Shown: one piece after another, positions 3,001 to 33,808 of the stretch
Layout: every line of letters starts with the position of its first letter
Numbering within the stretch: position 1 is the first letter of the stretch
Notes under the pieces: model-generated
Told to the model about the DNA's origin: nothing
Seen by the model: only the letters and a program-made list of their open reading frames with translations
Database searches by the model: none
Assembly (NCBI GenBank): GCA_047495785.1
Contig: JBLDXI010000045.1
Span: 124,001-188,000, forward strand
Direction: 5' to 3'
Length of the DNA: 64,000 bases
From: Lepidodermella squamata
Lineage: Eukaryota; Animalia; Gastrotricha
Translations under genes and position numbers: made by a program

Positions 3001-5327
3001 TATAGCTTGAGCAAATAGCGAGTGAATAATAACGCGATGGATGGGTAGAAAATCGAAGATCGAGAGCACTACATGTCCCGCGCGCACAGTCTGGACAGAC
3101 ATTTATCCCGTGTAGCGAAACGGCCATCTCATGGCGAATTAATCTGTGCTATAAGGCCATGGAATGCGACAACTAAAAGGGTTCTTTCACCTGATTTTTA
3201 ATGACAACCTGCGTAGCAGATGTTAGTTATATATTGGCTTCTGACGCATGTTGAAAGGCGCTTTTAATAGGATCCAGACGATGGGTTTAGGTGAAACAGC
3301 CTCTCGCTAATTAAGTTAAAACAATGTAGCAGTGCTAGATCGAAAAAAAACGGAACAAGAAATAAGAACCTATAAGTAATCTTAGATAATAGCTGTCGTA
3401 TAGTGCATGGCCTATAATGGACATTTTATTCAGAGGGGCCGCCCTGTTTTTCACGCTTGACGGATGTGGTCAGCAGGGTGACAGAAGTCATGGCAAAGGA
3501 AACCCGCTATGCAAAAAACTCTTGACGCTGTATAATGCTGAAAAGCACCGGATGAACGCTGATTACGGGCGACGTATTTCGAATGCATAAAAAACTAATA
3601 AAGATTTGTGTTTCTGGCTTGAGATAAAAATATATACGCCGGCTTGTTAGTGGCAACTACCTGCTGCCTCTCGAAGAGCAGGGGCAGCAGCACGAGCTGC
3701 TGGGATTTTTTGTCGTCGATATGTAAAAAAGCTTTGTCGCACGCTTGCCGTAAAAGAACGCATGCATAATAATATACATGGGGTCGGGAAAAAACGCGAA
3801 TATATCACAACAACAGTAAACAAAAAAGGAGCCAAGCGGCAGAAAAATTATGCGAGCCTACGCATGGCTGCAACCTGCTTCACGGCTGGACATCTGTTTT
3901 CTTGCAAGAAATCTCTGCAAGAATATTATTTTTTCCCGATGTAAAAAAAAAGAAACTTAATCTAGCGATATTGAGAAGACGCGGTGCTCCCCTCTTGAGC
4001 GCAAATTAAAAGCCCCTGGACGATCGGCGGGATTGAATAGTTCCTGGACAAGCGATTGATCACTCATTTCGGATAATTAGGAATTCAGAATCTCCCATCA
4101 AGTGCATCGAGAAAAAATGCTGGCTAGTATATGTGCATTTGAATGCTCGAGTATGGCCAGTGAGCTTATAATCTTCGCCGCAAAAAACGTAAATGTACTA
4201 GGTATATAGGTGAAGCGGGGAAGAAATCATCTTTTAATTTTGTTCAACAATCTGCGACGGCGCGCGAATCGCCTCGAGGGAGCGCAAGATTTGTCCGAAA
4301 TTTCTTTTTCGCCAGCCAAAAAAATGCCGAATGGCCATGGATTTCACCGGATATAAAAGCAATTAACTTCAAAATTAGTTTGAACTTGCGCTTTCGATTC
4401 TAGCTTTTTTTTATAAGACCCTTATTTGTATTTGGTCACATGGCAGGCTTCCTCTAGCCATTAATATGGGCAGTTTATTTTACCAGGGAAAATCCGTTTT
4501 AATCTGCATGAAAGACCAGCTAATAATTATAGAATTCTCGCTAATTAATGGGATTAAACGGGAGGACCGCGACGAGTTGATTTTTTTGTTAATTGAAGGC
4601 TATAAGGTGATCGGGGTGATTCAGCGCGTATTTTTCCGAGAAATCCTCAAGTCCAGATTAAAAATTTCACCAGAAGTGACGTAGCACTTATTCACGTCTA
4701 ATCTGACGGCGTTAATTCCGCGGGTCACAAGTGACATCTCAGCCACAGACATGATGTGTCTAGTCCTATGGCTTCTCGCGCATAATGTCAATCTTTCAAC
4801 TTATTTGTCCCCGAGTTCCAGGATGCCCATACTCGATATTGAAGCCGGTTCCTTGATGTTAATACCTTAGGAAGCCCTCTAACGGGTGCACCGAATGCCT
4901 ATCAACGGCGAAAATGTCAAGATTTCTAGCTACGTCCGCTCGTGTTATACGGTGACATGAACCGCGCCTGCAGTCCGGTCGTTCATTTCGTTTAACCTAA
5001 AATGAAAAAAATAGGGCAATCAATCACACGGTACGGGAATTCATTGTCCAAGACAAAACTGCAGCCTTTCGTTTTATTCATAAATATAGCTGTGAATTAC
5101 AAAAAAGACACTTCGAACCACGAAAAATACGACTATTCGAATATTGCGCCTCGGAATTTCCTAAAACATCACATTAAACGCGCGGACGTCACGCAGACAA
5201 AAACTTGTACCGAACGCTAATAAGTACACTTCATATCACCTGCATAGCATTTTGATTGCAATGTAATACTCGAATGAAATCGTCCACATCTAGGTGCAAA
5301 AACGACGAATGTCTCCTGGACAAATTG

Positions 5328-8300
5328 TCACAGCGACGACTCCTCTTGCAAAGTCCCGATAAGCTCGCATAGGGCCAGCGTCATGCTGTACATAGTGTAG
5401 GACTCGGGCAGTTGGGATAAACTCAGCGATAACAGCCGGCTTAAAACAGGCAGCGATTTAGCCGACAACGCCCCTTCGCCGAACGAACTCGCGAGTAAAC
5501 TGCTCTCCTGGTCGTTCAAGCATTCAGCGAGCCAATGAACTAGTTCAGGCGCGAAAGCGTCGAGCCGGTTTCGAAGCGCCTGAGACCGCGAGCCTCGATC
5601 GCCTTGATACACAAGTCTAGCGATGAGATTTCCGATAGCGGCAATGACGGGCGGCCAGAATTTGACGGCGTTGAATTCGGTTTGACCCTCAGTTGTTGCT
5701 GCTGAGTAGCTTTCGGCCAACTGAACGAGTTCGTCGGAAACGCTAACGCAGGTGAGCATGGCGAGATTTCGGCCGGTTATAAGCGACTTGTCCAGGTGCC
5801 AGAAGTTGACCAGTCGCATTGACAGTTCGTTCCACTGATCGTAGTAAGGGCAGTTTTTAAGGAGGAAGGTAACATTGGGCGGCTTTATCGCGAAAAGAAG
5901 CGCTCTTGTTATTCGAATGATGAACTAGAGTGAAAGAACCATTAATCATCAAGCTCTATTATTGCTATAAAAACTAACGTTTGTTCGACTTTCGACTACA
6001 TAATCGAGCACGTGAGGCGGTGGAGTCGGGGCAGAGTAAAGATCTTGAAACAGGATGGATTGTTCCTAAAATTTGAAAAAAATTTGAAAATATAATGAAA
6101 TTTAAAACAGTATTTCGCGGAACCCAATTTCAAATCTTTGCCTCCATCAAAAACCATCAAAAAGTGCTATTCTCGAATAATTATTTATACAGAATATCTT
6201 CTGATCTTCGGAACGAGATTTACGTGAGCGAAACCTAAATTCCAATTGCTGAACCAAATTCGCGTTTCGCGAAACCTAATTCAAAATGCTAAATGTTGTC
6301 AAGTCCAAAAAATTTCAAGAATTTCGAGCAACTTTGATTTCTAAAGTGACCGCTACGTCTTGCACAAAATTCCGCACTGAATATAAAAATAATTTATTTC
6401 GAATTAAGATTGGAAGTTCTGAAAAGTGGTTTCAAACCCAATAAATATTCAAAAATTTGGTTCCGGTAAGAGGACGACCTCTTTTATTATCATGATTACG
6501 CTGTGTTCTCAAAGTGATTATCAGGTTTTGTACAGAAAATCCAGCATAATTTTATTCAATTTAAAATCCGATATTTCTTATTATTATGTGGGCCAAAATC
6601 GCCCATGCAGTCCCATCAATTTTCCAAAATATGGGGTTACACAGTTTTCGTCAGGCCTTAAATTATTCGCTACTTGTTTTCCGTATCGCAGGTTTGTTTA
6701 CAGCCTAGATCCAGTTTGGAAATCGTATGTCAATCATTCAATAAACGTTAGGACAATTCGGGAATTACAAAATCATACATAAGTAGGTTATTATGGCATC
6801 CCAAAATTTCTGGACAATTTATTAATTTGCAGTATTTTCACTTCCGGGATGCAATAATTCGATCTATTTTCAATTTTTCAAGTACTAAAACTTCCAAAAC
6901 ATAAACCTTAAATTGAAGTGGATTGCTTTGATCTGATTTCTGACTTGTCAGCTATCAGCTGAGCAGTTAAAAATAGTGCACAATGAGATCAAACAACTAT
7001 AATGAATGGTGTCAATCGGACATTCAAGTACACAATGCAAAATTCATTAAAATGGCTAATATCATCTGGTCAATTTAAGCCGATGTAACTTGTCGCATCA
7101 ATCAATAATTCTGAAATGACCTACATCTACGTGGATAAATTAGGAGGATATATGATTCCGATTCGCTGAATCAGCATTTAAAAATAACAGTGTCCATAGT
7201 GCCAGTTAATTTACTTAGAATTAATCCTAAATTTGCTAAATCGCCTAATTTGACATAATCTTGTCATTAAAGTCGCTATCATTCATCGAATTTTGACGAT
7301 TCCGGTACGTCTGGGTCAAAATTAGACGTCCATAGTGCGGCAATTTTACTCGGACCAAATCCTAAATTTACCTAATTTGATATAATCTTGTTATTCAAGT
7401 CGTTTCTGGAACGTCTGCGCCAGACAGTTTTAATTTTAACAATAATTTTGTCCTAATGATCAGACAAAAACGGGTTAATCAACGTACAATGTGGGAGAAC
7501 AGGTGATCGAGAGAGGCTGGTTTCAGACGGAAATGGATGATAATTCGCAGGACGATAGCAGCCTCGAGATGCAGGTTCAAACACTCGACGTTATTTATCG
7601 TCACATCAGCAGCCGCTGCTTGATCCGCCAGCGAGATGCGGCCTTTATCATCCGGCGGTTTCGGCCAAACCGCCTCAGCATTCAGCAACGATTTTTCAAC
7701 CGAAGGAGTTAGCGATTTGTCATTCATTTTTGACGTAGACTCAATTAAGAGCTCAAATAGCTGCGAGGTAAATGCAGCAACCTGCTCAGCGGCTAATTCA
7801 GTTATCCCATCGCCGAATTCGGAGTCGCGAGGCGCCCTGTCCAGTCTTAAGGTGGACATGAAAGCCGTTTGAAAAATCGGCCGGACCAATTTAGACCATA
7901 TGTGTTGCAGCAGCCAGCATTTTAGCCGTAAATTAGCCGGCGATATCGAATTCGCGTACGAAATCGACGCTTCGAGTAGAAACGGCTGCGAGCCAATGAA
8001 TTCTTGCCGCGACCACGAGTGGGCCGATTCCCACGAGCAACCGGCTAAAATCTGATCGCTACTCAGCGAGGCCGGCAGAATTGCAATAAGCCGCGCTAGC
8101 AAATGATCGATCGTCGACTCAACTGTCAATAATTTGATTGCCTTGCTGCTGCTGCTATGCGCCGCAATGTCAACGCGCCCGAAAAACTCGCGAATGTCAA
8201 ATTTTGACGCAACAATCCACCGGCAAATGTGTTCACACAGCAAATCAACGCCGTTATTTGTTATCATCGATGAAGATAATTGCGGTAGTTGAACGACTTG

Positions 8301-11142
8301 AATGTCCTGAACATCTGTATCCCACCCATCTGTACCGGTTTCTTGCTGCTGCTGCTGTTGGGGTTGATTTATCGATTTACAAGAAATTAACATTTCAAAC
8401 AACGATAAAACAGTTAATTGCGTGCATAATTGACTCCACTCGTCCTGAGCGCTTTTGTTGTCGAATTTGAACGAATCACTTTCTAGCAGCATAGCACTGA
8501 CTGAAATATCCGCGTCCCAATCGCCGGCCATTTCAAGTAAGGAGGATTGCTCCTCGCTAGCGACTGGCTGATTTTTCGCCGATAATTGACTAGCTATTAA
8601 GGCGACGCTGAGCGCCTTAACGTGGGCGAACGAGTCTGAACACATTTTGAAACACGTGTTCCAAAACGTTTGACTCTCGGCTACAACAAGCCGCGATAGC
8701 ATTTGAAGCAGTGACACCAGTAGAGACAAATGCTCAACCGTTAACAGCGGCGAAACTGGCGAGAAGAAATAGCCGAGTAAAAATCGCAATAATTCAATCG
8801 GTTTGAAAATTTGACTAGCAAATAATGAAATTGCCGAGTCGAATTGATGAGCTCTGTCTGAATAGTCTTCCATTTGAAATAGAAACCCGAAAATATGAGC
8901 ACCAAGTAGCACGTCAGAGCTTTGCTGTGAAATTCCAGGCTTGCTAAGAACGCCTAATAGCTCCATAAATTCGATCAAGTGCATTGGCTTCGCTGGCTGG
9001 CGGTGATCGTCCTGGATTTTCATTCCATTAACAAGGCAATATGTCTCGAAAATCTGGTGATAACTATCCCGTTCATTCACTCGCAAACAAAATGTGCTGA
9101 GAATCGCGTCGAGATTCACCCCGGGTGATGCTTTTCGAGTTGACGCCGATTTCGCAAACGAGTCAAGATTCGTGTATAAATTAATCGCAGCAATCGCTTT
9201 GCTGCAAAGCGAATGAAACCGCTGGCCATCTTCGGCTGGCAGACGCTTCGAAATCGGAAGTAAATCAGTCAACGCTGCGATCAAATTAGCCGGATTTTTC
9301 TGCTGACTTTTAATAATCAGTTGAACGGCAGTGTCCCTGGTTTCGTCTAGATGCATTTTACCAACGATTTCCGCATAAGACTCGGATTTCCCTTGTCTCA
9401 AAGCTGCGTCTAAATCGCGAAGTAACGACTGATCCAACAACTTCGCACGGTTTCTATCTGCAACAGCCCAATGGAACGCAACCTCAACCGCGTAAATCGG
9501 GCCGTCGGATGATAATAGGAAGCAAGATTCGAGGCCTAAATCCATGGGATCATTCACCATTGACCGAGTCCATCCTAACATTCCGTGCGGTGCATAGATT
9601 AGACGAGAATTAGGGGCTACGTCCGTCACGTGAATTCGTTCCCATCGCTCGCCGCCCCAAACTTCGAGCTGGCAACGTCGAGGCGAGTGGATCACAAGAA
9701 ATTGCGTTCCTCTGGAATTTCGACCTTCAGAACTTTTAGAATCGCTGTCTTGAAGGGAACGAACCCAGCCGATTTGAGCCTCTCGATAACCTTTAAATTG
9801 CTTCACGATAATTCCGAGTTCGAGATCAAGGACGTAAATTCGATTAAAATTATCAGTTACAGCTGCTAGACGATGATTGGGAGACGCGGCGATAGTTTGA
9901 CCAACTCGAGGTCGGTCCAACAAAACGTTTTTCAAATTCAATATTTTAGGCGCTTCTTGAGCCGCGGTTTGTTCGTCTGACGACGAAGAGCTGTACTTCT
10001 GTTGATCAGTTTGCCGGCTCCAAGACAGCAGACCGGCCACGCTTGACACGATTTTATTAGTGACTGCCGAAGTCAAATCACTGACCAAACTGCCGGCTTG
10101 TTTCCGTTCTTGACCTGTCCAAGTTCCGATGAAGGGCATAGAACCCGCGCTGACGAAATGAGACAATTGATTGCATGTATTGATATCAGCACCACTTTGA
10201 TAAGTAGCATAAAACAATGCGCTCAGCTCGGACATTGGCCGAATTCCGCATGTAACGAAGTCGTTCACATTGTCGATATCTGTGAATTTCCATTTCGTAA
10301 ACGATAACATGCTATGAGGAATGGTCGATGCGGAATTAATAGGGCCACTCGACGGTCGCAATGCCTGCTGAGCGTAAACAACTCGCAACAACTGGAATAA
10401 ACCGAATGCATCGATAGTAACAAGAATTCCATCAGCAAAGAGTATGGTAAAATCGTCGCCAGGTTCAGCTACGTTACCGCATTGGGTATTCAACCAGTGT
10501 TGAGTTCTGCATTTCATTTGTACAATCGGCTTTGTATTAAACGATTGGCCGAACAAATAAATGCCATTCTACAAAAACAATTTCGTCCATTACCTAATCA
10601 AACACGTAATTATCAATGCTTACCTCTGTGAACATTTGCAGCAACCCACTTCGATATCCGACGGCGATGCAAGTCCACTCGGCCTGACCATGAGTGCTTA
10701 CTTTTTGAGAAGCGATCGGCAAACATATCACACATGTTGGAATATCATTGCTGGTATTAGGACCTCCGCTCAATTCGAGGGTGGTTCTCAAAGTAAAAAC
10801 AGGACCCGATTTGGAAGACTGGGACCCTATGATAAAAATATATCAAAAATCCAGATAGATCATTTCTCGTAGTAATTACTCGTCAACAAGCAGCACCTGG
10901 ATTTCTTCGCCAAGACAACCAGGTCACCAGTAGGAGCGATTGCTACCAGTGAGTCGTTTAAGCGAAACTCTTGATCGCCGTCATTACTCAGCCAAGATTG
11001 CCGTTGGAAGTTCACTAATAAATTAGAAAATTAACGCGGAAATCGTAAAATGTTAGAAAATATTACCTGGCGATGCAACAGCCGCTTTGGATGACAAAAA
11101 CTCGCTGATGTCACCGACCTTTTTTAACCACTGATTATCCAT
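5328..11142 (-). CDS. RAB3GAP2: Rab3 GTPase-activating protein non-catalytic subunit (multi-exon)
   Basis: ORFs 10594-10791, 7479-10556 and 5328-5819 join through GT-AG introns. ATG at 11142, exon 11142-11067, next exon from 11014, long exon ends 7488, 1.4-kb intron, exon resumes 6065. Motifs WTCIAVGYRSG, LAAVTDNFNRIYVLD and KQFKGYREAQIGW match the RAB3GAP2 N-terminal domain. Confidence 0.9.
7192..7402. repeat. Two diverged direct repeats (about 80 bp) in the RAB3GAP2 intron
   Basis: gtccatagtg...aatcctaaattt...cctaatttga(c/t)ataatcttgt(c/t)att(a/c)aagtcg occurs at about 7192-7274 and 7328-7402. Confidence 0.7.
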
Positions 11143-15455: not shown

Positions 15456-17143
15456 ATGGCTTCTACTGAACCCCAGACACCATTGCTACTAGCTGGCGAC
15501 AATCGGAGCTACCAAACAACCGACGATCAATCAGCTGGAAATATGGTAAAATAGCGGATTGTTTTAATAATGCCAAATAATATTAGTTTTAATTTTAGAG
15601 CGCAAGTACGTTAACTACAAATGACTCGCAAACTCGATTGACTGCCGATGCTGATGAATCAGCGGCTGAAACACGCGGTCCGACTCGTCGGCGACGAAAT
15701 CCTCGAAATGGCGACGCTGCTTCAGCTGCACCAGGGGCTCAACCTGGCGCTAACTCAAATCCTGACCATCATGAACCGACGGAAGAGGAGTTGCAAGATA
15801 TGTCGGTCGAAGAGCTAAAATACGGCGCCAAACATTTCATAAAGCTATTTCCGCCAATTACTATCTGCATGATCTTGACGATTATTCTATTGAAAATCGC
15901 TCCGCAGCCGGCTTCAGGTGGCACTTCAGCTGGGGTTGTGTTGTTTGCTGAAAGTTCATCTGGCAGCTGGGAGGACAATTTAGTCGCTGCGTTGAAGAAC
16001 GTGGGCATCGTTGTCACAGCCTTCGTTATCATGACCGTTCTGCTGGTTGTCCTGTACAAATATCGTTGTTATTGTGTATGTTTATTACAAATCGCCCACA
16101 TTTGTTTGATAAAATTTATTATTCTTTCAGATCTTGAAGGCGTGGTTTTCCTTCGCGATTTTCCTCATTTTCTTCTTCTTGTTCACAATAACGATCATCA
16201 CAATCTTGGTTCAAATGGACGTCGCCTTGGATTTTATTTCAGTTTTTATTTTCGTTTGGAACATTGGCGTCCTCGGTGTCATGTCGATTTTGTGGCAGGC
16301 CCCACTGCCTGTCCGCCAAACCTACCACATTCTGGTCTGCTCTCTGATTTCATTTACCCTGGTGCGAATGCTGCCCTCCGTCACCACCTGGATCTTATTA
16401 GCAGCTCTTGTCGTTTGGGACTTGATTGCTGTTCTCACGCCGTGTGGACCCCTCAAAAAACTGATTGAAATCGCCCAATCGCGAAATGAGCAAGAGTCTG
16501 GCGTTTTTAATTCTATTATCTACTCCAGTGCGTGATTTTGTGTGGTTATTAAGGAGGACTTCTTAAAAAATTTTATTATTACAGCTGCGATTGCCTACGG
16601 GTCAGTTGGCACAGGGGATGATGGCGTTGCAGAAACCGGTGGAAACCAACCGCAACCACCTCCTACCCAGCCTGTCCCGCAAGGGCCTGGTCTTCCTAGA
16701 GCCGGCGTCCCCGATCGAGCCAGAGAAGTGCAGGCCGCTTTGAACGGCTCGGACGACCCGTTGTATAACCGTAATAACCACTCATCGCCGCAAGGGTCTC
16801 AACACTCCGAAGACGAGCGTGGCGTTAAACTTGGTCTCGGTGATTTCGTCTTCTACAGCGTTCTTATTGCTCGCGCCACCGAAGATTCAGCTGATTGGAA
16901 TACAACCATGGCGTGTTTTCTCGCGATCCTAGTGGTAAATTGATTTTCAAGGAAAGTTGAATCGATATGCATTGATGAATTATTCAGGGTTTGTGTTTCA
17001 CGCTGATCTTACTTGCCATTTGGAAGCATGCCTTACCAGCTCTTCCGATATCGCTCACATTCGGCCTGATTTTCTATTTCGGTACCAGCAATATAATTTC
17101 GCCGTTCACCGACAGTCTCGCCGTGAACATGCTTGTCATATAG
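15456..17143 (+). CDS. PSEN: Presenilin (gamma-secretase catalytic subunit)
   Basis: Exons 15456-15545, 15599-16075, 16131-16527, 16585-16934, 16988-17143 splice in frame. Motifs [36 protein letters not shown] and HALPALPIS; both catalytic Asp and the PAL motif are intact. Confidence 0.96.
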
Positions 17144-20696: not shown

Positions 20697-21602
20697 TTAA
20701 AATTTTGAAAGATCCATTGTCATATAGTCATCAACTTCATCGTCCGCTTTTGATATCGATATAGCATCCGGCTCATCATTTACGACTAGATTTATATCTT
20801 CCGAATCAAAATAAGCATCCTCCTGATCCTGCTGCATGGCTTCACTAATTTTTGCTGGGTCAGGCCTGAAAAAAATAAACGTGATATAAATCAAACAATG
20901 GGATAAACAAACAAACAGCAGATCGCCAGGATTATCGTCTTTTCCGCTGAGAAATCTTTCCTCCATTTGAGACACAAATTCCCTGGTGAGAATCTCTTTT
21001 TCAGCGGCTGAACATTTTGGCCCATTGAATGCCATTTCAGTATCTTCATCGTCTTCGTCGAATTCTTCGACGCCTTGTGTATCGTTCAGTACTCGACCTG
21101 CCTCGCCCTCCCTTTCCAACATGTTGTTGAATAGATCAGCCGTACGTAGATGATCGATTTGGCCCAGAAGCATTTGAGATGCTGTATTGTATGTATTATA
21201 TTCTTGCCGAGCAAGTTTGTTTACGTCTTCCTCAGTCAGATATTGACCAACCAATTCATCATAAAGCACCGGATTGCGAGTTTTCATTTCGCCCAACGTA
21301 AAGTAGTTCCCTTCTTCAGCCATCTTTTTCATTGCGAGGAATCTTTCATTTCTGCCGATGATGTCAGCCTTTCGATTAAGGTTTCGAATTTTGCGCGAAT
21401 ATAAGAAAAATAGCCCGTCGTTATTCAACATTTTGCGAAGTTGAAGCAAATGATCGATAGACATTTCTCGCCAATAAGTTTCAACAAACAACCTCGGAGA
21501 TGTTGCCAACATTTCTACAGCGGATTGAGAAGAATTAGATTGAATCTCCCGCTGAGAGATCTCCGTGGCTAAGAGCCTGAGAGAACACTCTTCATCTGTC
21601 AT
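20697..21602 (-). CDS. CCDC97: Coiled-coil domain-containing protein 97-like
   Basis: RNERFLAM...GNYFTLGEMKTRNPVLYDELVGQYLT, EFVSQMEERFLSGKD and QDQEDAYFDSE match CCDC97/DUF2052. A probable in-frame 51-nt intron lies near 20866-20916. Confidence 0.85.
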   Translation of the reverse strand: MTDEECSLRLLATEISQREIQSNSSQSAVEMLATSPRLFVETYWREMSIDHLLQLRKMLNNDGLFFLYSRKIRNLNRKADIIGRNERFLAMKKMAEEGNYFTLGEMKTRNPVLYDELVGQYLTEEDVNKLARQEYNTYNTASQMLLGQIDHLRTADLFNNMLEREGEAGRVLNDTQGVEEFDEDDEDTEMAFNGPKCSAAEKEILTREFVSQMEERFLSGKDDNPGDLLFVCLSHCLIYITFIFFRPDPAKISEAMQQDQEDAYFDSEDINLVVNDEPDAISISKADDEVDDYMTMDLSKF

Positions 21603-21684: not shown

Positions 21685-22479
21685 TCAATGGCTTTGAATA
21701 CTAGCGCACAAGGATCGAACTATATCAGCACTAGTTTCTGTGCAAGCGCCAAATGAGGCCATTAACCTCTGATCAATGCTAACAGAGTCGACTGATTTAG
21801 ATGAAGTCTTACAGGATGAATGGATTTCAAGGCATTTTGTTTGTTCAATGATTGAAGCCGCATTGTCACAGTTCACACCGCTGCCGGGCATAATGAGCAC
21901 ACCAAGCTTTTTGACAGCTACGTGTTGTGATATAGCTTTAATAACATCACATCCATCTTTCGCATTCAACTGGCCGCCGCTTGTTAGTATCCTGGCAAAA
22001 CCAAGTTCAGCAATATCTTGAACAAGCTTGAAAGAATAATTTAAATTCCAGCTATGCTTGGCCAAGCTGTAATCGAACGCTCGATGGAAAGTAACCGGGA
22101 ATGGCGCACAGATTTGCAAGAGCTGCTTACAAGCAGTTACATCGAGTTCACCCGAAAGAGTGAGAACGCCAAATACAAAACCATTGATGCCATCAATTTT
22201 TTTAAAGTCTTCGATATCGGCAATCATCGACTGCAACTCGGCCGATGAATATGAAAAGTCCCCAACTCGGGGTCTTATCATCACAAAAATATCTGTTCTA
22301 CCATGCCCGGAACTGTTTTGCCGCAGTTCGCAAACAGCTTGAATAAACCCAGCCGTTGGTGTCAAGCCACCAACCGCCAATGCAGAGCACAGTTCAAGCC
22401 TCCCGGCACCACCCAAAATTGCAGATTTAGCACTAGATAAGCAGTCAACAGGTACCTCTAGCAAAACTTGGCTAGGCAT
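21685..22479 (-). CDS. CUTC: Copper homeostasis protein CutC homolog
   Basis: Intronless. LLEVPVD, GAGRLELCSALAVGGLTPT, VMIRPRVGDFSYS, VTFHRAFD, RILTSGG, EIHSS. ATG at 22479 preferred over the upstream non-ATG ORF start. Confidence 0.95.
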   Translation of the reverse strand: MPSQVLLEVPVDCLSSAKSAILGGAGRLELCSALAVGGLTPTAGFIQAVCELRQNSSGHGRTDIFVMIRPRVGDFSYSSAELQSMIADIEDFKKIDGINGFVFGVLTLSGELDVTACKQLLQICAPFPVTFHRAFDYSLAKHSWNLNYSFKLVQDIAELGFARILTSGGQLNAKDGCDVIKAISQHVAVKKLGVLIMPGSGVNCDNAASIIEQTKCLEIHSSCKTSSKSVDSVSIDQRLMASFGACTETSADIVRSLCASIQSH

Positions 22480-22691
22480 AGCGAGTGTCGAGCGAGAAGC
22501 AGGGAGCTGAATAAGGTAGGGCGCGGAAAGTGAATATCTTTGAATGAAATGTCGCGCTGGCAAATCTCAAAATCCAAAAAAATCGCAGGAATTTCAAATA
22601 TTTTTAGCGGGCGTTCTTGACGTTGTTTATAAATTTAATATTATTTAACAAAAATTGTAAAACAAATACCCTAATATCATATTTTGTAAAC

Positions 22692-22810: not shown

Positions 22811-25800
22811 ATGAGTCGTGCAGGTAAAACTCCGGATGGAGCCTTTGATATCGTCATCAGACGAACAGAAGCAGGAGACGCGCCTGGAATCGAATCTATG
22901 ATAAAGCCTGAAATCGAAAACGTCTTTGGCAGAATCAACGTGCTGAAGATCATGTTTGTCCTAAAATATGTTGCTTTTTGTCTTACTATGTTTATGCTTC
23001 ATAGGGAGAGATCGCTGATATCTATATCCGTTTTGTCAACAGATGAACAAGTTCTCGCTCACGGCGATTTTTCTGATAAACCAAATCATGATATTGCATC
23101 TCAAACGGAATGGTTGGCGTGGCTCGGTCAATATTTTGACGTTCCAAAGCTTACGGCCATTAATACAGTGTTTCTGCATCTGTTCGTTTGTCAGCCAGAG
23201 TTTTCTTCCTCTCTTGCTCCCGAGCTGATTAACCACATGTTTTCGCTGATGCCTCATGTTCATTATTGCTTGTTCTTGGTTCCCAGAGGCCTATTTCCAG
23301 GTAAATATATTTTCACGCTTATGCTGACATGGAATCACCCGTAAATAATTTAGACAAAGCGATCTCTGGCTACTTTCAAGAAATACCGTTGCGGAACAAA
23401 GATGTCAAACCAGATCGAGTTGTTGTGTTTATGGCTCAGAGATCTAATCACGTACCCGTGTTGCACGTCCGCTTAGCGAAAGCTGAAGACAATGACGACT
23501 TAGCTCCGTTGTTCAATGCACAATCTGATCATTTGCGAAACACTTACGGTGACTTTTATCTTGCCGAGCTGATTGAGGCCCAAGACGAGATAATGAAGTG
23601 CATTGTTGTCGAGGTGATTAAATGATTTCAGCATGTTTTATCAAAACCTTTATTTTGACCTCCGTAGAGCGACAGCAAAGCTGTTGGATTTCTTTCTGTT
23701 ACTGGAGAAGTGGATTTGGACGGGCTTGAAACGGCTTTTCAACTTGAGCCTTTCAATTACTTGCGCAAATTATTACCCCCAAGCCCTGAAACTCCCAAGC
23801 CAAAAGAGATCGATGAAAGCCAAGAAGAGGCAGGCGAAACAGAAGTTGTTGAGGTCGAACCTCCACCAAGGCCAAAGGGCCCCTCAAATGCTATTTGCAT
23901 CCAGTTGTTTGCGATTGATGAAGCGTATGAGACGCGGTCCACCGACTTCCTACCCCGGCTGTTTGAACTTTTCCCGGATCGCGAGTATGTTGTCATAGCT
24001 GTCCCGCATCTCACTCCTGAATTTCAGCTGCTAAAGCAATTTGTGGTGAGTATTAACATGTTAAGTAATACTTGAAATATTCTTATGACTCTGATGTAAT
24101 TTGCAGCGTGTTCCTCCACACCCTACTGCCGTAGTTCCTCAGCAACTCTACGTTTTCAGCAAATATGGGCTTCTGAGGTATTTTAAAATAAATATTAAAC
24201 CGAAAATAACGGGTCACCGTCTTTGCTCAAAGAGTATTCGTTTTATTATAAAACGTGCAAATTTCTTTCACAAGCAAAAGCATCATAGTCTTTTCCACTT
24301 CATTTTACGCGGATATTACGTTTATACTGAAGATAAAGATAGCCATATCTAAAAATGGCACTTTATCATTTTTTTACACTAATTTCGAAAAGAGACGAAA
24401 GATCACTAGTGTGCGCTAATCGAACAAATATGAGGCGCTGAGAGAGAGCGAGCGATTTTTACAGAAATATACCGACTAGTTTGATACTTTATTTTCCAAG
24501 ACATTAATAATCAAATAGAGAACAATTTTTCAAAGTTTCCGTTCAAGAAATAAATCTAGCTAAGTTGCTCCCCACTGTTATCACCAACAAACATATCATC
24601 GCCGCCGTCCATATCGTCGAGATCGCCTAGCATAGCGACTAATCGGCCGAGGTATTCGGTCTGCTTGCTTTCATTAGCCACCCGTTTACGCTCGAGTTGC
24701 AGTAGTTGATTCTGCATTCTCAGCTGTTGCTCTTGCATCTTCACAATTTTCTCGAGCAGCTCAGTCTGCCGGTTACTGGCCGACGATGAGGAAGAAGATG
24801 GACCGGCGACGGGACTTTGCTCACCAGTTGTAGTTTGCTGAAGTCTTTTCACTGGCTGCGTGACAGATGGGGGATGTAGTGTCGAAGATGTCGCTGGATG
24901 AGGCGTCGCCGTTGTTGGCCGTTGCGAAGTCGAGATCACCGCTTGTTGTTGATTTTGGTGGCTGAGATTTAGCGTAGCGCTCGGGCTCGATCGATTCACA
25001 ACTTGAGGCGAATTAGGCTCACGCTTCACCTCCGGTGTGAGGGCAACGGGTTTTTGATGTGCGGTCTGAGGAGCAGGCATAGCTTTTGTCAACTCCATCG
25101 GAGTGCTTCGAGCAGTACCAGCAGCCGACGCTGGAGAACGGCCCCAGCTGCCCGTAGATGACGGCGGTTCTCTTTTCGAATAAATCGCGTGTAGCTGCTT
25201 GAAAAACGGCGCGTCAGGGAATGTTCCTGTCGACTGGAACGTCTCGAGTTGGCGCTTGTAGAACGTGTAGACGTCTCGCCACTTCTCCCTCGCCTGCGAG
25301 TCGGTTCTTTGGAAGCCCCGGGCCCTCAAGCCCTCGCCAATAGTCTCCCATAACCGCCTTCCGACTAAATTCGGGTATTTTCCGAACAACTCGATCAACG
25401 TTCGAGTTTCGTTATCATTCCATCTTTGGCCATTCCACCGTTTGTTTGGCACAGCCCCGGATGCGTTATTTCGGATAGGACCAGCCGATGACGCAACCTG
25501 GCCTGACCCACTAGCTCGACCCGGCGAGGCTGAGTTGGCGTTTGAGCGAGGTAGGGGAGGGTGGAAAGACTGACGTGAAGATTTGCCATCGGCCGATCCG
25601 CAACCTGATGACCCCATCGAGTCTTGTTGCTGGTAATCGTCGAGGGCGAGGGGCGCATCACTGCCGTCACCGCTTGTTGTCGCGGCCTCGTGGTCGTACA
25701 GCAAATCGGCGCCGGCGCCACTCATTCCAATCCCGTCATCAACACCATCGTTGCTGTGTTGTTGAAGATGTTCGTCAGGCACGTACATTTCATCCGGGTA

Positions 25801-28800
25801 GTTTGCGGCATCCTCGTCCCGAACGATTATAATGCCGTCGTTAGCGACTTGGTGCCGACCGCCGAATGCGAACGGCTGGCCTTGCAAAATCGAACTTCGG
25901 CACGGCGAAGAGTCGAGAGGCATCGCACTATAAAAAATATTTTTTCAAAATTCTGCGAAAAATTATGAGCTCGTCATCTTACCTGGTCATAGTCGATGTC
26001 GGGGGTCAACAAAATATTTATATTAAAAAAAAATCTATCAAAACAAGAAAAATTTAGAAAAAAATAAGAAATTTATTTTAAAAAGAATTTGCGATTGCAT
26101 TTCGCATATCATCGGCCGAAAGACTCGCTTTGCCAATCGTTTCTGAGACTTCGATTGGGCTCTGAGCAACTTCATCGCGTTTCAGCGGCTCTTCCTCGAA
26201 ATCGCGTTGTTCAACAAGAAAATTGTGCAACACAGCACAGGCGACAAGTGTTTGCGGAACGTAATCCGGCGAATTTTCCAACTTTTTCGCCAAAATTTGC
26301 CAGCGTTTCGAGAGCAGGCCAGCGACTTGATTTACAACGCCAGATGTCAGCGAGGTTACGTGAGTGTTGAGTAATTTTTGCTCGGGTGTCGTCGGATTTT
26401 TAAACGAAGTCAACAGCCAAGTTCGAAGAGGGTAGTCGTGGCTCTCAGCGACTAAAACCGGCCGTAGACTGTCGTCGTTTTTCGTTCTTATCAGCGGCTC
26501 TGCGAGTAAATCACCAGCCTCGGCGCGTTGGAAAAACGCGGTTTTCTCGAATTTTCGACTCGGATCTTCTTCGACAATTAAATCAATAATGCGTAGCTCG
26601 TCGTCGCAAACCAACTGGCAGCTGATTGCTGTCGAAGGCTGATTGCCACCTGAAGATAACTCGACGTGAAACGGGCCGATAATTCCGGCGATATTCGGCA
26701 GTAAGGATACGCGGCGAAAGTGTTCGATTAAACACCGGCAAGCCACGCCGTTTTCCAGCCCAGTCATCCATTGATTTTTAACAGCGACTAACGCCAGAAC
26801 CAACTCACGGGTCGTTCGATGAACCGTCGATTTCGGGACATTGAAATAATTTCCAGTTGTTGTATAGCTCTCGCCAGATGCGAGTTTCCGTAAGCCGATC
26901 GCTATTCGTTTTTCCAACGGAATTGTCGTGCCGAAACGCGTTTCAAGCTTGTGAAGGGAGTCTTTCATAACAGCGCAAAATGCGGTGAAAGCCCGGTGGG
27001 ACATGCCTAATGTCGCTCGCCAGTCTTCATCGCCGTGATTTGACGTTAAAAACTCGTCGAATTGACAAATCGATTTAGCGCGAGTGCCTGCAGGACTTGG
27101 TTGTTCAACATCAGGCTGCTGGGCGATGATTGAGGCAACAGAAGGTAGCAGGTGTGTTTCGTCGAAAATGAACGAACGAAGGGCGGAATTTGTCGACCCC
27201 CTTGCTGTGAAATAAGTTCGAACGACAGCGGCTAGTATTTGCTTCTTTCGCCGTTTCATTACTTGTCGCATGTGCCACTGCTGCTCGGCATTTGCCATTA
27301 TTATTGTGCAATGACCTAGCCAATAAAACTGGTTTTTATTAAGGCGGCATGAATGAAAAATGATCGATTGTATGAGCCTCAAGTTTGGCGGATTAAGAGG
27401 GGCAGCGCGGGAAGCACGTGCCACGTTGTGCCAGCCTGTGGAACACAAACACTCGGTGGATTATTGCTCGAGGCCGCGGCACCACCACGTGCACGAAAAT
27501 AAGACGACGACGTAAATAGCTACTTAATTGGCGGATGATGGTGGTGGTGGCAAAAAATAGGCACCGTTGTTGCGCGGATTCGTTCTCACAAAATGTGTGT
27601 GTTCTTGAGGGGAAAAAACAGATAACTCGCACACGCGCGACGGTGTGTTGTTGTAGTGTGATTTTTGCTGAAATTAACGTGATGGCAATACTAGTGGCAA
27701 AGGGCGTAAATTAAGACGCATCATCGTGAGAGTAGGCGCCGCAAAAATTGACAAGTTGCGCTGTGCGTATAATATTGTTATTATTGCGACCGTGTGCACC
27801 GTGTGCGAGTCGAGTTGTGGGGAAACAGTAAATTTTTTCGCGACTTTTTAATAGAAATCGAGCGGGCAGGAAGTCGCCGTCGCCGCCGCCGTGAAGCCGC
27901 CGTCATCGATGTGAGTGAAGGCTGTGCGTGTAGGGCCACATGGCAATTCTGCTCGAATCGTATTATGCGCGGCGCGGCGGCGGCTGCTTCTGCTGTGTGT
28001 TTGCGCCATTCCCTGCTCGGCAGCCGCCGGCACGGCTATATTTGTTGTGTGAAAGGCAGGCAGGCAGTCAGGCAGGCAGCTCGGTCTCAATTTGTGCCTA
28101 GTAGGGTCGTATGGGGCATGCGACACATACATCTGGCTGGCCACTTTAATGGCGCGCCGTGCACGACGCCTATGCCACGAGTGCTGAGCGCGATGTGACT
28201 GAAAGAAGTGCGATGGCGGGGGAGCCGGCGCCGCCGCATCACGACGGCCCCACAGCTGCATTGAGCCAACGAGCCCGGCACATTGCCGACGAAGCGCTGA
28301 GACTAGAACAACTCTAGCGCTAGCCTCGACCGACCGACAACACACAGAAGCGAGCACACAGAGCCGGCGCATGCTACGCCGCTAATAAAATGCGCCGCAA
28401 ACGCGAAAGGCCGGGCGTAGAAAAATGTGTGTATGATGTGCTGTGTTGTAGCCCACTCGCTCGCTCGCTCGCCGCTCGTCCCGGTCTCTCTCGCTTTTTC
28501 AACGCACGCGCGGCGGCGGTGTGGAGTAAGCAATATTATGCGAGCGGGTATTGATTTGGTGGCGGCGCTGCGGCGGCAACGTCGGTCGGGTCGGCCCGGC
28601 GGCGGCTGGTTGGCAGCAGCCGCCACCGGTCGGTCGGTCGGTCGGTCCGTCTAACAACCAGACCACCACCACCACCACCGCCACTACACGCACTGCTGCG
28701 CATGCAAATATGTTGGACCCGCCGACTGCCCTGCGCTCGCAACTGCGTCGAGCTGCTCGCAACAAAAACAACACCTGCACGCAGGTAATCGCACGTCGCC

Positions 28801-31800
28801 AGAACTCGAGCGCATATGTTCTACCAACCTACCTAGCTACTACCTATGCAAATTGCCGGCACCGTGCTCGGCTCGTTGTGTTCGGTAGCCGCGCCGCCGC
28901 CGCCGCATGATGATGATTCGAACAGTAGGAGGGGGCTGGCCTGATGCCTGCCTGCCTGCCTGCCTGCTGATTGCGTCCACACGTGCGCGCGCCCGCACAC
29001 TCGACGCGGCATTTCGTTTCGTTTCATTTGCCAAATCAGAGCCGCGCAAGCTGCCGCTGCCGCCGGCTGATTAGCAGGCCCGCCGCCGTAGCCGACGATG
29101 AGCGAAAATTGTTATTATTATTATTAGTATTAGCCACGCTGCTCGCGAATAGCCAGCGCCTGCTGCTGGCTACTACGGCGGCGGCGCACTATGCGCACTC
29201 GAACGCAAAATCACAATATCGGAAAATTGACGAAAATTGCATTTCCACAACCGCACGCCGTAGACTTGTGTGTTTATCTAGCGAAAAGCTGAACCTAAAT
29301 TCAAATAATTATTACAAAATCGACGGTGACCCGTGTGTTAATTGAAATGACGTAAAATTGATGAGATGGGTAATAACGCAATTTTTCCCGTACTCGCAGC
29401 TCGTTCACTGTTCGACCAACTTCGGCCGACGATTTGCCGGCGCTGGCGGCGTTGACGGATACATTGGAACTGCGCGAGTCTGTCATGGAACACATCAAAA
29501 TGTACACGCAATTCCGCCGCCACAAGGTTTATTTTTTTCTCCACACTCTTGTTATTGGTGTTATTCAGCCAGTCTATATAGAAGCCTAATGTGTGGACAG
29601 AAAAAAGACAAGTTTAAGCAAACTTGATGAAACTCAGGTCAAGAAAGCAGACAAATATTATTCTGAAAAAAGTGAAAAATTGTCTGATCAGTTCATTAAT
29701 AATTCCATCGTCATGCAGAAAATGACCGTTAACAAGTGATAAGTGAGGTTTTGACATCTTGAGATTTTGAGGATAAATGAACGAGGAGTCGAACGATATC
29801 AAGAATAGGTTGGTAGCCGTCAGGGTTGCTGAGAAAATGGGCTTCAAAGTTTTCCGGTGAAAATTGCTTATTTTGAAAAAATGCGCCCTAAAAAAATTGA
29901 GTTTTTATTGCATCAATTAATGAGCGCAATAATTTATTTTCTTGCGCGCACTCGTAATATTTTGGGGTAATATGAGGTGAGGAATCATGCTAGACATTCA
30001 AAAATATTGATGGAATCAAGCTAGTGCTTTAAATTGATAAGCCTTGTCGGTGACACTTTGGGGTCCCCGACTTTTGAGGTGAATGGAAGCCTCCTAGAGA
30101 ATTTCGAAAATTTAAAAATCCTAAAAAAAACTGAGTAAGAAAATCTAGGAATTCAAGAATCGACCCTCTTCAAGTCAATACACTTTTCACTTGTTAAAGG
30201 TCATATTATTTTCCGCAAAGTGAGTCATCCTGGGTCAATTTTTTCTCAAAAATGGCAGCCAGTGCGGGTTTTTTTTTAATTTTTTTTGTCGGAAAGAAAC
30301 AAACGCCAAGAATTTATTTTCCGTATCCAGACTGCTCTTAATTCGAACTCAAATTGATCGCAACCAGGAATTAATTTAAATGGGTCAAAAATGACGAAAT
30401 CAGGCTTTTTTTTACGCATGATTCATACAGACTATTTTTTTATTTCAGGAGAGCGCTAATAACGCCGTTCAAGCTTTTGTGGCGATTTGCGCCGAACAAA
30501 TCGTCGGCGTGGCAGTGATTGAACAGGAGAAAAACATTGAGTATTTACGATCGCACTACAACATCGAAGACTTTGTGTTCTACAACCACCACCGCTACGA
30601 AGAACACGGCCACATATGGCACCTGGCGATGAACCCAGCCTTCGCGTGCCTCACCCGTGTTTTCCTCAAAGAAATCATGCGAATGGGCCACAAAACGTGC
30701 CTGTACTACCCGATATACCCGGACAACTGCATCCAACGCCCGCCCGCCCACAGCGTTGTTTGCTGCTTGTCGGAAATGGTGCCAGTCGCGCCGCGTCGCC
30801 AGCCTGTTTACGACCTGTTCAAACTCGGAATAAACGCACCGGCTCAGGCTGTCTTACAGAGCCAAGTGCCGTTCGCGTTGTACCATACTAATATTAAAAT
30901 GTGTCTGGAAACTAAACACGGGGTGAACGCGAGAATTGTTGTAGTAGGCGCGTCTGAAACGGGCCTCGCGGCTCTGGAGCGACTAATCATGAGCCCGCAC
31001 TTATTGTTTCATAACATCACCCTGCTATCAACGCACGGTTTACCCGTCGCGCCGATTTTGATGGCTAATAACGGCATTAATGACGAGGCTGAGCAGCGGC
31101 CGTCCGGCGAGTTGTCGCTGGTCGAGCGATTCGCGGCGAAAACAGCGATCGCCGACTCCCTCTCGCACCACCGCTCGCTTTATTTGCGTTGCGCGATTAA
31201 TAGCGTAGCCGGGCGAATGACGGCTATCAACCGCACGCGGAAACACCTGATGGTGAACGGCGATCGGCAACTGCCCTACGATTACCTAGTGCTGACAACC
31301 GGGCAGCAGTACACCATACCGGATATGTTGACAACGGCGGTTCGCGGCAGCTCGCAAATGTCGATGACGTCATCGATAATTCGCGCGCGCACCATGCCCG
31401 AGACGAGCTCGTTGTCGCAATCCGCCGCCTTCAACCCGAATTCAATTATCGACAACGTGTTCGCGGTTAATGACATGTACGAGGCTGATTATTTAACCGA
31501 ATGGGTGCCGAAAATGTTAGCCGCGGTTAGTGAGAACGGCTACACCCCGAAACGCGTGGTCATCTACGGCCGAACTATCGATGCTTATACAGCGTTAGAT
31601 TCGATTATCGAGTTCGGATTCTCGCCTCAGGATGTTGTTTTCGTACTACCCCCACTTGCCGAGGAGGAGCCGACCTGCTTCAATAACCCTGATGTTGAAA
31701 ACGCGATTCACTCCCGCATCGACCAGGCCGGTGTTACGGTTCTGGTTGACTACACCCTGAAAGATTTCACGCTGCGAGACCGGCCTGGAGTTGATAACAC

Positions 31801-33808
31801 CACAGAACGGGTTATAATAGCATCCACCTTAAATTTCCAGGCAGTTGAGAGTGATGAAATAGCGGGCGTTGACGATGTTCTATGCATGTTGGCGTATGAT
31901 CATAAATCAATTGCGAGTGATACGTTCCGCGCGTTGAATAACGCGTGTTTAGTCATGGATAACCGGCTGGTTGTTGACCCGGAGTTTCACACGAATGACC
32001 CGGCGATTAGAGCGGCGGGTGCGTTGACGAAATACAGCCGCAAGTTGTACGCCGATCGCGCTACGCATGATTTGTTCAACCCGCGCGAGGTTGGCTATGA
32101 ATTGGCGCATCGCCTGCTGACGCATTTCGACCCGATTCGTGGCCCGGCGCCGAACCGGCCGTCACCACCGGCGCCATTGGTGCCGCTGTTCGAATGGCCA
32201 CGGATCATCTACGCCGAGAGCTTGCCGTTTGGTTTCCGCTATCTACAGGTAATTGATAAATGGGTCTGAATATTTGCACCTCTAAATTAAGGTTCCAGCA
32301 CTACAACGTGTCCCATAAGTAACGCAAGCAAAGAAAATTACACGGAAAAGGGTTCAGGCACTCTACAATGTGAGTGACACATCTCAAGGCCAGAAAAATT
32401 GAAAAAAACACGAGAATAGTAATCAAGTATGTCACGTGTTAATGGGATTTAAACAGTCCGAATAAATTCGGTCCAACCGGGTAAAATACCGAAAATTACC
32501 GAACCTGTTACCATCGTTATTTTTCGGGTTTTCTCCGGTACATTTTTTGTTTCTTCGGTTAAATCTCGGAATAAAGAGGGAATATTCCCTCGGCAGGTTT
32601 AATTTAAAAAAATTGGTTGAATTTCCTGGAAAACGTTGCCAAATTGAAGAATATTTTCGCAACTTCTGGGACACGCTGTTATTGGTTTCGATTTTTGGCG
32701 ATTTCGATTTTTATTCCCTTTAACCATAGGTTTTTTTTTGTTTTAGCTATCTGGTACCCTCGGGTATGACAAAAGAATTTTGATATCACCTTCAAAGGCT
32801 GATGAAATCGAAAAAATCACTGATTATTAAAATCGATAATCGATAATCGATAGTCGATATCGGCTGTGCAAGCTGGAATATGACTCGTAAAATGACCGCC
32901 GATAGCGCAAAATACGCGTAATAAGGAGATCTATCGGTTGGCTTGATCGTGAACAAATTGAAAATAGTGCATCTTGGTTTTGGGGCCTAAGAAGCAGTGC
33001 TGGAACCCAAATTTACGGTGTGTATTTCACAGAAACAATGGAGATTTTAGGATTTAATTTTCAAATTTTTCACTCAAATTATTGACTGCACTGTGATGAT
33101 TTTTTTTAAATTAATTTTTCAAATTTAATTTCCATTTCAAAATTTTAAAATAGAAATTGTCGAAGTTCCTGTCGCTTTTGTTTTTTTGACGAATTAGTAA
33201 CATGATTAGTCATATTGCTTTGATTATTTTTTCAGGTCGAAAGAGCTGGGCCAAGATTGCGACTCGATGACCAGTTGCGAGCTTACGATTACGGCGACGA
33301 AATGTCAACCGGGTCGACGGACAATTCCAACTTTTTCCGACTCCACCTTAACATCAACGAAACCGTCGAAACAATAACGTGTCTAACGGAGAAAACGCGC
33401 GATGTATCTCAGTATTTATGCCTATTCGGCGTTCACGAGCGCTACTTGAATTCGTTGAAGAGCCGCTGGGAAGAAAAATTGGTCACCGACTTTTTCGACT
33501 ACTTCTCCGAACCTTGGGCCGTTGCGTTGTTCCACGATCGTTTCCGCGATTTGCGCGACGAAATTCGCCAGATTTTCGCCTCAGAGTCGAAACCAACGGC
33601 TAAGGGCAACCAGAGTTTTGAGGCGAAATTGCGCGAGTACATCGGCTCTGATATTCAAATGACGCGATTTTTGCGCAAATTCATCTCCGATAATTACCGC
33701 AATCCGGAAGACACGGAACTGCGCAAATCGATCGAAGTTCGGCTGTTGAATTACCTTGAATTCAATAGCTACCACTTACCAATGTACGCAAGATCTGGAA
33801 TGATTTAA
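22811..33808 (+). CDS. CFAP61: Cilia- and flagella-associated protein 61 (multi-exon, large intron 24178-29399)
   Basis: INTVFLHLFV, VRLAKAEDNDDL, YGDFYLAELIEAQD, NAICIQLFAIDEAYETRS, YLRSHYNIEDF, VNARIVVVGASETG, LPYDYLVLTTGQQY, end YHLPMYARSGMI. An exon missed by the ORF track at 29400-29526 (SFTVRPTSADDLPAL...FRRHK) bridges 24177 to 30449 in phase. Last exon 33236-33808. Confidence 0.95.
24556..25990 (-). CDS. Myb/SANT-like (trihelix-type) DNA-binding protein with C-terminal coiled coil, nested antisense in CFAP61 intron
   Basis: WNDNETRTLIELF...LWETIGEGLRARGFQRTDSQAREKWRDVYTFYKR has the three-Trp Myb/SANT-like pattern, followed by a low-complexity linker and ELLEKIVKMQEQQLRMQNQLLQLE. Probable micro first exon ATGACCAG (25990-25983) and 55-nt intron 25982-25928. 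Confidence 0.85.
26078..27298 (-). CDS. PIF/Harbinger transposase-derived (HARBI1/ALP1-like) protein with degenerate DDE triad
   Basis: WRATLGMSHRAF, IPLEKRIAIGLRKLASGESY...FNVPKSTV (HTH), CQLVCDDELRIID, YPLRTWLLTSF, GLLSKRWQIL and ACAVLHNF are DDE_Tnp_4-family hallmarks. Uninterrupted ORF with ATG at 27298. Confidence 0.9.
   Translation of the reverse strand: MANAEQQWHMRQVMKRRKKQILAAVVRTYFTARGSTNSALRSFIFDETHLLPSVASIIAQQPDVEQPSPAGTRAKSICQFDEFLTSNHGDEDWRATLGMSHRAFTAFCAVMKDSLHKLETRFGTTIPLEKRIAIGLRKLASGESYTTTGNYFNVPKSTVHRTTRELVLALVAVKNQWMTGLENGVACRCLIEHFRRVSLLPNIAGIIGPFHVELSSGGNQPSTAISCQLVCDDELRIIDLIVEEDPSRKFEKTAFFQRAEAGDLLAEPLIRTKNDDSLRPVLVAESHDYPLRTWLLTSFKNPTTPEQKLLNTHVTSLTSGVVNQVAGLLSKRWQILAKKLENSPDYVPQTLVACAVLHNFLVEQRDFEEEPLKRDEVAQSPIEVSETIGKASLSADDMRNAIANSF
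27400..29260. promoter_or_regulatory. GC/CpG-rich, microsatellite-rich region upstream of the Harbinger-derived gene pair
   Basis: (GCC)n, (GGTC)n, (CCTG)n, (ACC)n and (TCGC)n runs and CACGTG boxes near 27415, 27485 and 28980; composition contrasts with the AT-rich introns. Regulatory role is inference. Confidence 0.4.
32275..33024. mobile_element. Probable degenerate MITE in the last CFAP61 intron
   Basis: cacctctaaattaaggttccagcact at about 32277 is an imperfect inverted repeat of agtgctggaacccaaatttacggtg at about 32996-33020. Confidence 0.5.

Follow-up and report, generated by a model that had tools for sequence, protein, structure and literature searches.

A probably co-domesticated PIF/Harbinger transposase and Myb gene pair nested in a CFAP61 intron of Lepidodermella squamata

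The 64,000-nucleotide stretch analyzed here (hereafter the window) is part of contig JBLDXI010000045.1 of the gastrotrich Lepidodermella squamata (assembly GCA_047495785.1, positions 124,001 to 188,000 of the forward strand). Its minus strand carries two intact, single-copy open reading frames (ORFs), A (27298-26078) and then B (25923-24556), which lie antisense to CFAP61 and are nested within a single intron of that gene. A encodes a protein related to PIF/Harbinger transposases and B a Myb/SANT-like partner. The pair very probably goes back to one PIF/Harbinger insertion in the CFAP61 intron that has lost its ends and its catalytic residues, leaving both genes as host genes. An initial annotation, made from the DNA letters alone, had proposed such a co-domestication with the ancestral linkage retained, and this proposal is supported by the single copy of each gene, the lack of terminal inverted repeats (TIRs), the loss of the catalytic triad, and the presence of the same pair in the CFAP61 intron of a second species, known from metagenome contigs. 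A word search returned one relative of A (P0001, 397 aa), its ortholog in this metagenome species, and two relatives of B (P0002 and P0003, the latter from a third species).

Gene A, gene B, and the spacer between them

Gene A (26078..27298, ATG at 27298, stop at 26078-26080; all features of A and B given here are on the minus strand) encodes 406 amino acids plus a stop, in keeping with the intact Harbinger-type ORF of about 400 aa that had been annotated. It passes the gathering score of the Pfam family DDE_Tnp_4 (E 3.7e-9, 36.8 bits, cut-off 24.8), with a match that spans only positions 29-158 of the 158 in the profile and leaves the region of the first aspartate motif unaligned. At the local base composition, the chance of an open frame as long as A is ~2e-9. 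From its N-terminus, the protein displays a basic patch, KRRKK (residues 15-19, 27242..27256; KKRRR in P0001), which is a candidate nuclear localization signal (NLS), followed by a helix-turn-helix (HTH) domain (residues 100-176, 26771..27001) and an RNase-H-like transposase core devoid of the catalytic triad (residues 197-370, 26189..26710), where the pLDDT (predicted local distance difference test) of the AlphaFold2 model is mostly >90. The HTH domain is the most conserved part of A and shares 23 consecutive identical residues with the ortholog, TRFGTTIPLEKRIAIGLRKLASG; second in conservation are the C-terminal helices (..QTL.ACA.LHNFL.E). An AATAAA read directly 3' of the stop (26072..26077) would provide a poly(A) signal.

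To evaluate the catalytic site, we aligned A and P0001 (MAFFT) with 58 relatives that a full HMMER search had retrieved from 1.84 billion proteins; the ortholog P0001 was the only close relative of A in this search. The majority of the 58 relatives read IDGTH, GDSAYP, and VERAFG at the three catalytic columns (D/D/E), and it is on these columns that GIIGPFH, VAESHDYP, and SGVVNQVAG of A align. Gly208 (26675..26677) thereby occupies the column of the first catalytic aspartate, which is Val in the ortholog; Glu285 (26444..26446), followed by a one-residue insertion, that of the second, which is Pro in the ortholog; and Asn323 (26330..26332) that of the catalytic glutamate, which is Asp in the ortholog. 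The triad columns of P0001 thus read V/P/D, and the surroundings of the second position lack acidic residues. The initial annotation had read all three catalytic positions of A as altered and had named an alignment to DDE_Tnp_4 as the check on this loss; our alignment confirms it (G208/E285/N323), with neither an intact nor a shifted triad in A or P0001. As judged from these columns, a canonical DDE site cannot form in A or in P0001.

The loss of the triad is not accompanied by a loss of the fold. With the same alignment as input, AlphaFold2 models A at a mean pLDDT of 86.8 as a helical HTH domain (residues ~100-176) followed by RNase-H-like strands and helices, and the substituted triad positions fall where they are expected, i.e., on strand 1, just after strand 4, and on a long helix. 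When compared through VIA-align, the model superposes on the piggyBac, Tn5, and ISCth4 transposases with Z scores of 8.4-8.8 over 221-227 residues, while its HTH domain matches sigma region 4 and Myb-like HTH folds with Z scores of 5-6. A Foldseek search against the PDB returned weak rows only, yet all of the top rows were DDE transposases or integrases. In its predicted structure, A therefore keeps a transposase fold despite the loss of the triad, and the HTH and structural motifs that the annotation had considered retained are indeed found in the model and in the identical HTH run.

Gene B (24556..25923, ATG at 25923, stop at 24556-24558) encodes 455 amino acids plus a stop and passes the gathering score of the Pfam family Myb_DNA-bind_4 (PF13837; E 1.7e-11, 44.8 bits, cut-off 27), an assignment that also holds for P0003 and, as a precomputed match, for P0002. 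At the local base composition, an open frame as long as B would arise by chance with a probability of ~1e-8, and an exact-sequence look-up of the window B protein gave no match. Three parts of B are conserved: an acidic N-terminal motif (residues 16-56, 25756..25878), with a non-synonymous divergence (dN) of 0.13 where the synonymous divergence (dS) is saturated and 75% DNA identity to the metagenome contig L011; the Myb_DNA-bind_4 domain assigned by Pfam (residues 166-247, 25183..25428), which AlphaFold2 models as helices at 170-249 and in which many columns are invariant across the three species; and a long C-terminal helix (residues 382-435, 24619..24780), predicted as a single helix with pLDDT >90, near-identical in the ortholog and conserved in P0003. 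This helix, 54 residues long, is a candidate coiled coil. The low-complexity linkers between the three parts vary freely, and the AlphaFold2 model of B, built from three sequences, is poor except for the Myb domain and the long helix (mean pLDDT 47.6). B has no clear basic patch. An AATAAA located ~65 nt 3' of its stop (24488..24493) presumably acts as its poly(A) signal, as read from the sequence.

The two genes are separated by a spacer of 154 nt (25924..26077), counted between the stop of A and the start of B at 25923, against 59-60 nt in the ortholog. The initial annotation had placed a Myb/SANT-like gene on the same strand 87 bp downstream of A: the gene, its strand, and its Myb_DNA-bind_4 domain stand, whereas the distance does not. 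A value of 87 nt does match the distance to an alternative ATG at 25990. This upstream ATG (25988-25990), combined with a 55-nt GT..AG intron (25928-25982), joins B in frame to give M-T-S-A-M-P, and a start of B through such a mini-exon is possible, the intron being of a size typical of the neighboring CFAP61 introns. A rotifer spliced-leader sequence had no match in the genome, and a reading of the locus as an operon or as trans-spliced gains no support from this search.

The CFAP61 intron, the orthologous pair, and selection

On the plus strand, Pfam matches on ORFs place CFAP61_N (22811-23625) and CFAP61_dimer (33257-33808) on either side of the pair. The intron between them that hosts A and B spans 5222 nt (24178..29399, plus strand), from a GAG/GTATTT donor at 24178 to a ..CGCAG/ acceptor at 29399: the exon at 24107-24177 stops at the GT donor, and the following exon starts after the AG at 29399. 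The nesting in a CFAP61 intron stated by the initial annotation is thus confirmed, and the strand of the pair, which it had left unstated, can be added: both genes run on the minus strand, in antisense orientation relative to CFAP61. In this 121-Mb genome introns are very short, and the CFAP61 introns around the pair are otherwise 40-60 nt long. The exons that flank the host intron match CFAP61 of the ortholog's species, the donor position is kept in L011, and in both species the preceding exon breaks off at the same residue, followed by a GT donor (window ..YGLLR, L011 ..YGMLR). We also considered whether the insertion had split CFAP61 into two genes, and this could be ruled out: conservation ends exactly at the GT donor in both species and the next exon follows the AG.

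P0001 and a near-identical variant are encoded on four ENA metagenome contigs (L011 and L013-L015), which differ by 0-4 nucleotides per gene and hence represent one species. On 4/4 contigs, the Myb gene lies 59-60 nt downstream of the transposase-like gene on the same strand, both being antisense between CFAP61_N and CFAP61_dimer, so that the search for orthologs in the same CFAP61 intron, put forward by the annotation as a check, recovered the pair in the same order and on the same strand. Synteny with the metagenome species extends to a CCD97-like gene and a presenilin gene. Identity between the two species is 54-66% for CFAP61 and, across aligned columns, 44% for A and 64% for B; P0001 is 40-44% identical to A, and P0002 is 47% identical to B by BLASTP.

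At this distance synonymous sites are saturated (dS undefined by the method NG86), so that no dN/dS ratio can be given, and identical residues are encoded by different codons in 61% (A) and 68% (B) of cases. By contrast to dS, dN is 0.31-0.57 gene-wide and falls to 0.26 in the HTH block of A, and to 0.13, 0.26, and 0.17 in the N-motif, Myb block, and C-terminal helix of B, respectively. DNA-level alignment within the intron recovers the coding blocks of A and B only, apart from one simple repeat. Since synonymous sites are saturated, functional blocks are near-identical, only coding blocks can be aligned, and the open frames are improbable by chance, both proteins appear, on this qualitative comparison of sequences, to be under strong purifying selection. 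A dN/dS well below 1 had been anticipated for the orthologs; the contrast between conserved blocks and saturated dS does speak against neutrality, whereas the numeric ratio was unobtainable. In A, constraint is concentrated in the HTH domain and the C-terminal helices; in B, it falls on the N-motif, the Myb domain, and the long C-terminal helix.

The third species is represented by P0003 (427 aa), a B-like protein 39-40% identical to B, in which the Myb domain and the C-terminal helix are conserved. P0003 is encoded on the 1.4-kb contig L012 (1-1436; JGI 3300031231), which may be a transcript: it has a 43-nt leader and stops five bases past an AATAAA. No transposase-like partner was found from the species of P0003, and two scans of JGI metagenome contigs with the alignments of B and of A yielded no further loci.

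Several observations concern the non-coding part of the intron. Its 2 kb upstream of A (27450-29400) are unique in the genome and are not a repeat, and an Rfam scan of 22-34 kb gave no match. The segment 27800-30000 has a GC content of 0.52, against ~0.42 around it, and its ORFs are junk-like only. Also unique in the genome and unmatched in Pfam and Rfam, this segment may contain the promoter of gene A. A short simple repeat of tetranucleotide type is found upstream of A in the same intron of both species (28627-28684 in the window, 9432-9574 in L011), and it is the sole non-coding match between the two introns. Among the metagenome contigs, L011 and L014 differ from L013 and L015 by indels within the 600 nt of intron upstream of the transposase-like gene, while both genes and CFAP61_N are nearly identical, which suggests haplotype-level structural variation.

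Origin of the pair and competing explanations

A six-frame search of the 121-Mb assembly returned a single copy of A and of B, the next matches being 25-31% identical. Many near-identical copies had been named by the initial annotation as a finding that would speak against domestication, and these are absent. The annotation had also seen no TIRs, in agreement with our search of the flanks, in which no TIRs flanking the pair were found and inverted matches across the pair were either simple GA/CT-rich repeats or inside CFAP61 exons. The locus thus displays the two-gene make-up of autonomous PIF/Harbinger elements (transposase plus Myb/SANT-like) and lacks their TIRs, TAA/TTA duplication, and multiple copies. 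It combines the features by which domesticated Harbinger genes have been recognized (Casola 2007; Markova 2022): intact coding regions, a single copy, no TIR or target-site duplication (TSD), and syntenic orthologs. A young multi-copy Harbinger family of this genome (L016, G000:C34:527000-536999, at 5281-6246 on the minus and 4233-4670 on the plus strand; copies L003-L007) served as an internal control, with a full-length DDE_Tnp_4 match of 110.8 bits, an intact D/D/E triad, and a convergent Myb_DNA-bind_5 ORF2.

In a tree of 64 proteins (LG+G4), A and P0001 form a clade with 100% support on a long stem (~1.0 change per site), nested among Harbinger transposases, and the well-supported Harbinger group that holds them also includes the active family of this genome. 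Amphibian proteins with a similar G-T-F-H motif are placed elsewhere in the tree, and joining them with A costs 41 log-likelihood units (approximately unbiased (AU) test, p 0.06). The genome further contains a second dead pair of a Harbinger-like and a Myb_DNA-bind_4 gene (L017, G000:C21:806000-815999, at 8221-9210 and 6260-7654, both on the minus strand). Like A and B, its two genes are on one strand, its transposase part, too degenerate for Pfam, has lost the triad and has Gly at the first aspartate column, and the partner is of the Myb_DNA-bind_4 type; its Myb gene precedes the transposase-like gene, the reverse of the A-B order, and its identity to A and B is 24-26% only. A common origin of the two pairs is not rejected (AU p 0.44). 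The independence of the co-domestication that the annotation had assumed is therefore weakly supported with regard to the amphibian dead copies and unsupported with regard to this second pair. It is conceivable, though we consider it rather improbable, that both dead pairs derive from one ancient domestication that was later duplicated, with the gene order reshuffled by partial loss from a tandem duplicate. If true, this single origin would have given rise to a family of two-subunit regulators specific to a rotifer-like spiralian lineage, with expression from operon-like dicistronic units.

Under the preferred explanation, a PIF/Harbinger transposon would have inserted antisense into the CFAP61 intron in an ancestor of L. 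squamata and the metagenome species, shed its ends and catalytic residues, and left two genes that turned into host genes. B would bind DNA in a sequence-specific manner through its Myb/trihelix-type domain and self-associate through its C-terminal helix, while A, unable to cut, would bind B and serve as an adaptor or, through its HTH domain, as a second DNA-contact subunit. Since A is the sole bearer of a clear basic NLS-like patch, it may carry B into the nucleus. The close spacing of the two genes on one strand (59-154 nt) would keep the subunits co-expressed, possibly on one transcript, as in the dicistronic Anopheles APLG1-APM1. We infer this division of labor by analogy with the Harbinger3_DR transposase/Myb pair, ALP1/ALP2, HDP1/HDP2, and the insect PLG/PM pairs, and the same analogies suggest that the A-B complex would act as a sequence-specific transcription or chromatin regulator.

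A number of observations weigh against this explanation. The change at the second position of A, D to E at residue 285, is chemically conservative. No close relative of B could be detected among transposon ORF2s, and the ORF2 of the active Harbinger in this genome is of the Myb_DNA-bind_5 rather than the Myb_DNA-bind_4 type, such that a transposon origin of B is suggested by its adjacency to A and its domain family. The full pair is found in one other species only, at a distance that precludes quantifying dN/dS, and the 0-4 differences per gene among the four metagenome contigs are too few for a selection test. Finally, the sole hint of expression is the B-like contig of the third species, whose end lies just past an AATAAA.

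Of the other ways to account for the locus, the one that survives best, with a low probability nonetheless, is that the domesticated pair represses related Harbingers, by occupying transposon ends or by poisoning the transposase in a dominant-negative manner, instead of acting on host genes. The young multi-copy Harbingers with intact DDE would offer a target in the same genome, and A retains an HTH domain and a fold without catalytic residues, as such a repressor would. However, A is ~30% identical to the active family, whose ORF2 is Myb_DNA-bind_5, which makes cross-recognition unlikely, and the pair has been kept across a divergence over which families of transposons are normally replaced.

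We give still less credence to the possibility that the pair is kept in the intron for a cis effect on CFAP61, through antisense transcription or local binding of B that tunes this cilia gene. The nested antisense position is common to two distant species, and a plant Harbinger-derived protein is reported to act on a neighboring gene (PMC11893794). Nested genes seldom move, however, so that a kept position needs no functional reason; no non-coding intron sequence is conserved, and constraint at the protein level indicates that the products matter, beyond transcription alone.

An old immobile remnant that drifts neutrally, shared by the two species as an ancient insertion, would also lack TIRs and have lost its triad, as befits a dead element. 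This is very improbable, given that both genes are open in both species despite saturated synonymous sites, which makes four ORFs of 345-455 codons, and that conservation comes in domain-sized blocks, with at least 23 identical residues running, in an intron whose non-coding part can no longer be aligned. Lastly, mobility through non-canonical or shifted catalytic residues, for which Glu285 on the second aspartate column and the acidic E213 conserved near the first strand could be cited, can be dismissed with near certainty in view of the single genomic copy, the lack of TIRs, the same locus in two species, and the Val and Pro of the ortholog at the first two positions, with nothing acidic near the second.

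Elsewhere in the window, the genes neighboring CFAP61 are RAB3GAP2 (7479-10556, minus strand), presenilin (15638-16468, plus strand), the CCD97-like gene (20697-21602, minus strand), and CutC (21685-22563, minus strand), of which presenilin and the CCD97-like gene are syntenic with the metagenome species. For the RAB3GAP2 ORF, the best matches with a species name come from bdelloid rotifers, at an identity of only 27%.

Comparison with known systems

Equivalent Harbinger pairs have been described in the literature (PMC9710019, PMC4671723, PMC5339849), and the closest parallels to A and B come from insects. Four cases are known there in which both genes of one Harbinger insertion were co-domesticated and stayed linked, one of them dicistronic: Drosophila DPLG7-DPM7, Anopheles APLG1-APM1 and APLG2-APM2, and LPLG2-LPM2 of Lepidoptera (Markova et al. 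2022, PMC9710019). In the Harbingers that have been studied, the Myb-type protein binds the transposon ends and the transposase, and governs nuclear import of the transposase (PMC9710019). Like the insect PLG/PM pairs, A and B are adjacent, single-copy genes, one transposase-derived and one of Myb/MADF type, from what would be one insertion, with a short spacer and no TIRs or TSDs; they too display synteny across distant species and apparent purifying selection, and, much as only one partner often carries an NLS in the insect pairs, a clear NLS-like patch is seen in A only. Unlike the insect pairs, A and B reside in a host that is not an insect, all three triad positions of A are substituted, and the genes are nested antisense in a CFAP61 intron. 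In addition, the partner B is of the Myb_DNA-bind_4 type and features a conserved acidic N-motif as well as a long helix at its C-terminus, and A has no close sequence kinship to any of the 1.84 billion proteins except its ortholog.

In Arabidopsis, ALP1/ALP2 are accessory components of Polycomb repressive complex 2 (PRC2), and HDP1/HDP2 belong to the IDM1 histone acetyltransferase complex (PMC4671723, PMC5339849). The triad of ALP1 reads DGA and that of HDP1 is not conserved, and each of the two works with its Myb partner in a chromatin complex (PMC4671723, PMC5339849). A and B resemble these plant pairs in combining a co-domesticated Harbinger transposase with an incomplete DDE triad and a Myb-type partner. 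They differ from them in linkage and in the basis for their function: the plant genes are unlinked and their function was shown experimentally, whereas A and B are linked and their function is inferred only. In vertebrates, the Harbinger-derived HARBI1 and the Myb-like NAIF1 are reported to interact (Sinzelle et al. 2008, cited in PMC9710019). HARBI1 keeps its DDE triad, and the HARBI1 and NAIF1 genes are unlinked. The gastrotrich pair is alike in joining a Harbinger-derived transposase-like protein to a Myb-like partner and unlike it in the loss of the triad of A and in the linkage of A and B.

Taken together, this case adds a well-supported linked co-domestication of both Harbinger genes beyond insects, plants, and vertebrates, and supports the view that the transposase-Myb partnership has repeatedly been recruited as a unit. 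The pattern of constraint, in which A keeps its HTH domain and B its N-motif, Myb domain, and long helix while the catalytic residues are gone, points to the surfaces needed by the host function. The case opens no new question and its novelty is modest: on sound grounds, the pair can be counted among an already familiar kind of transposon domestication, and what is new compared with the known pairs is the lineage, the complete loss of the triad, and the conserved nested position.

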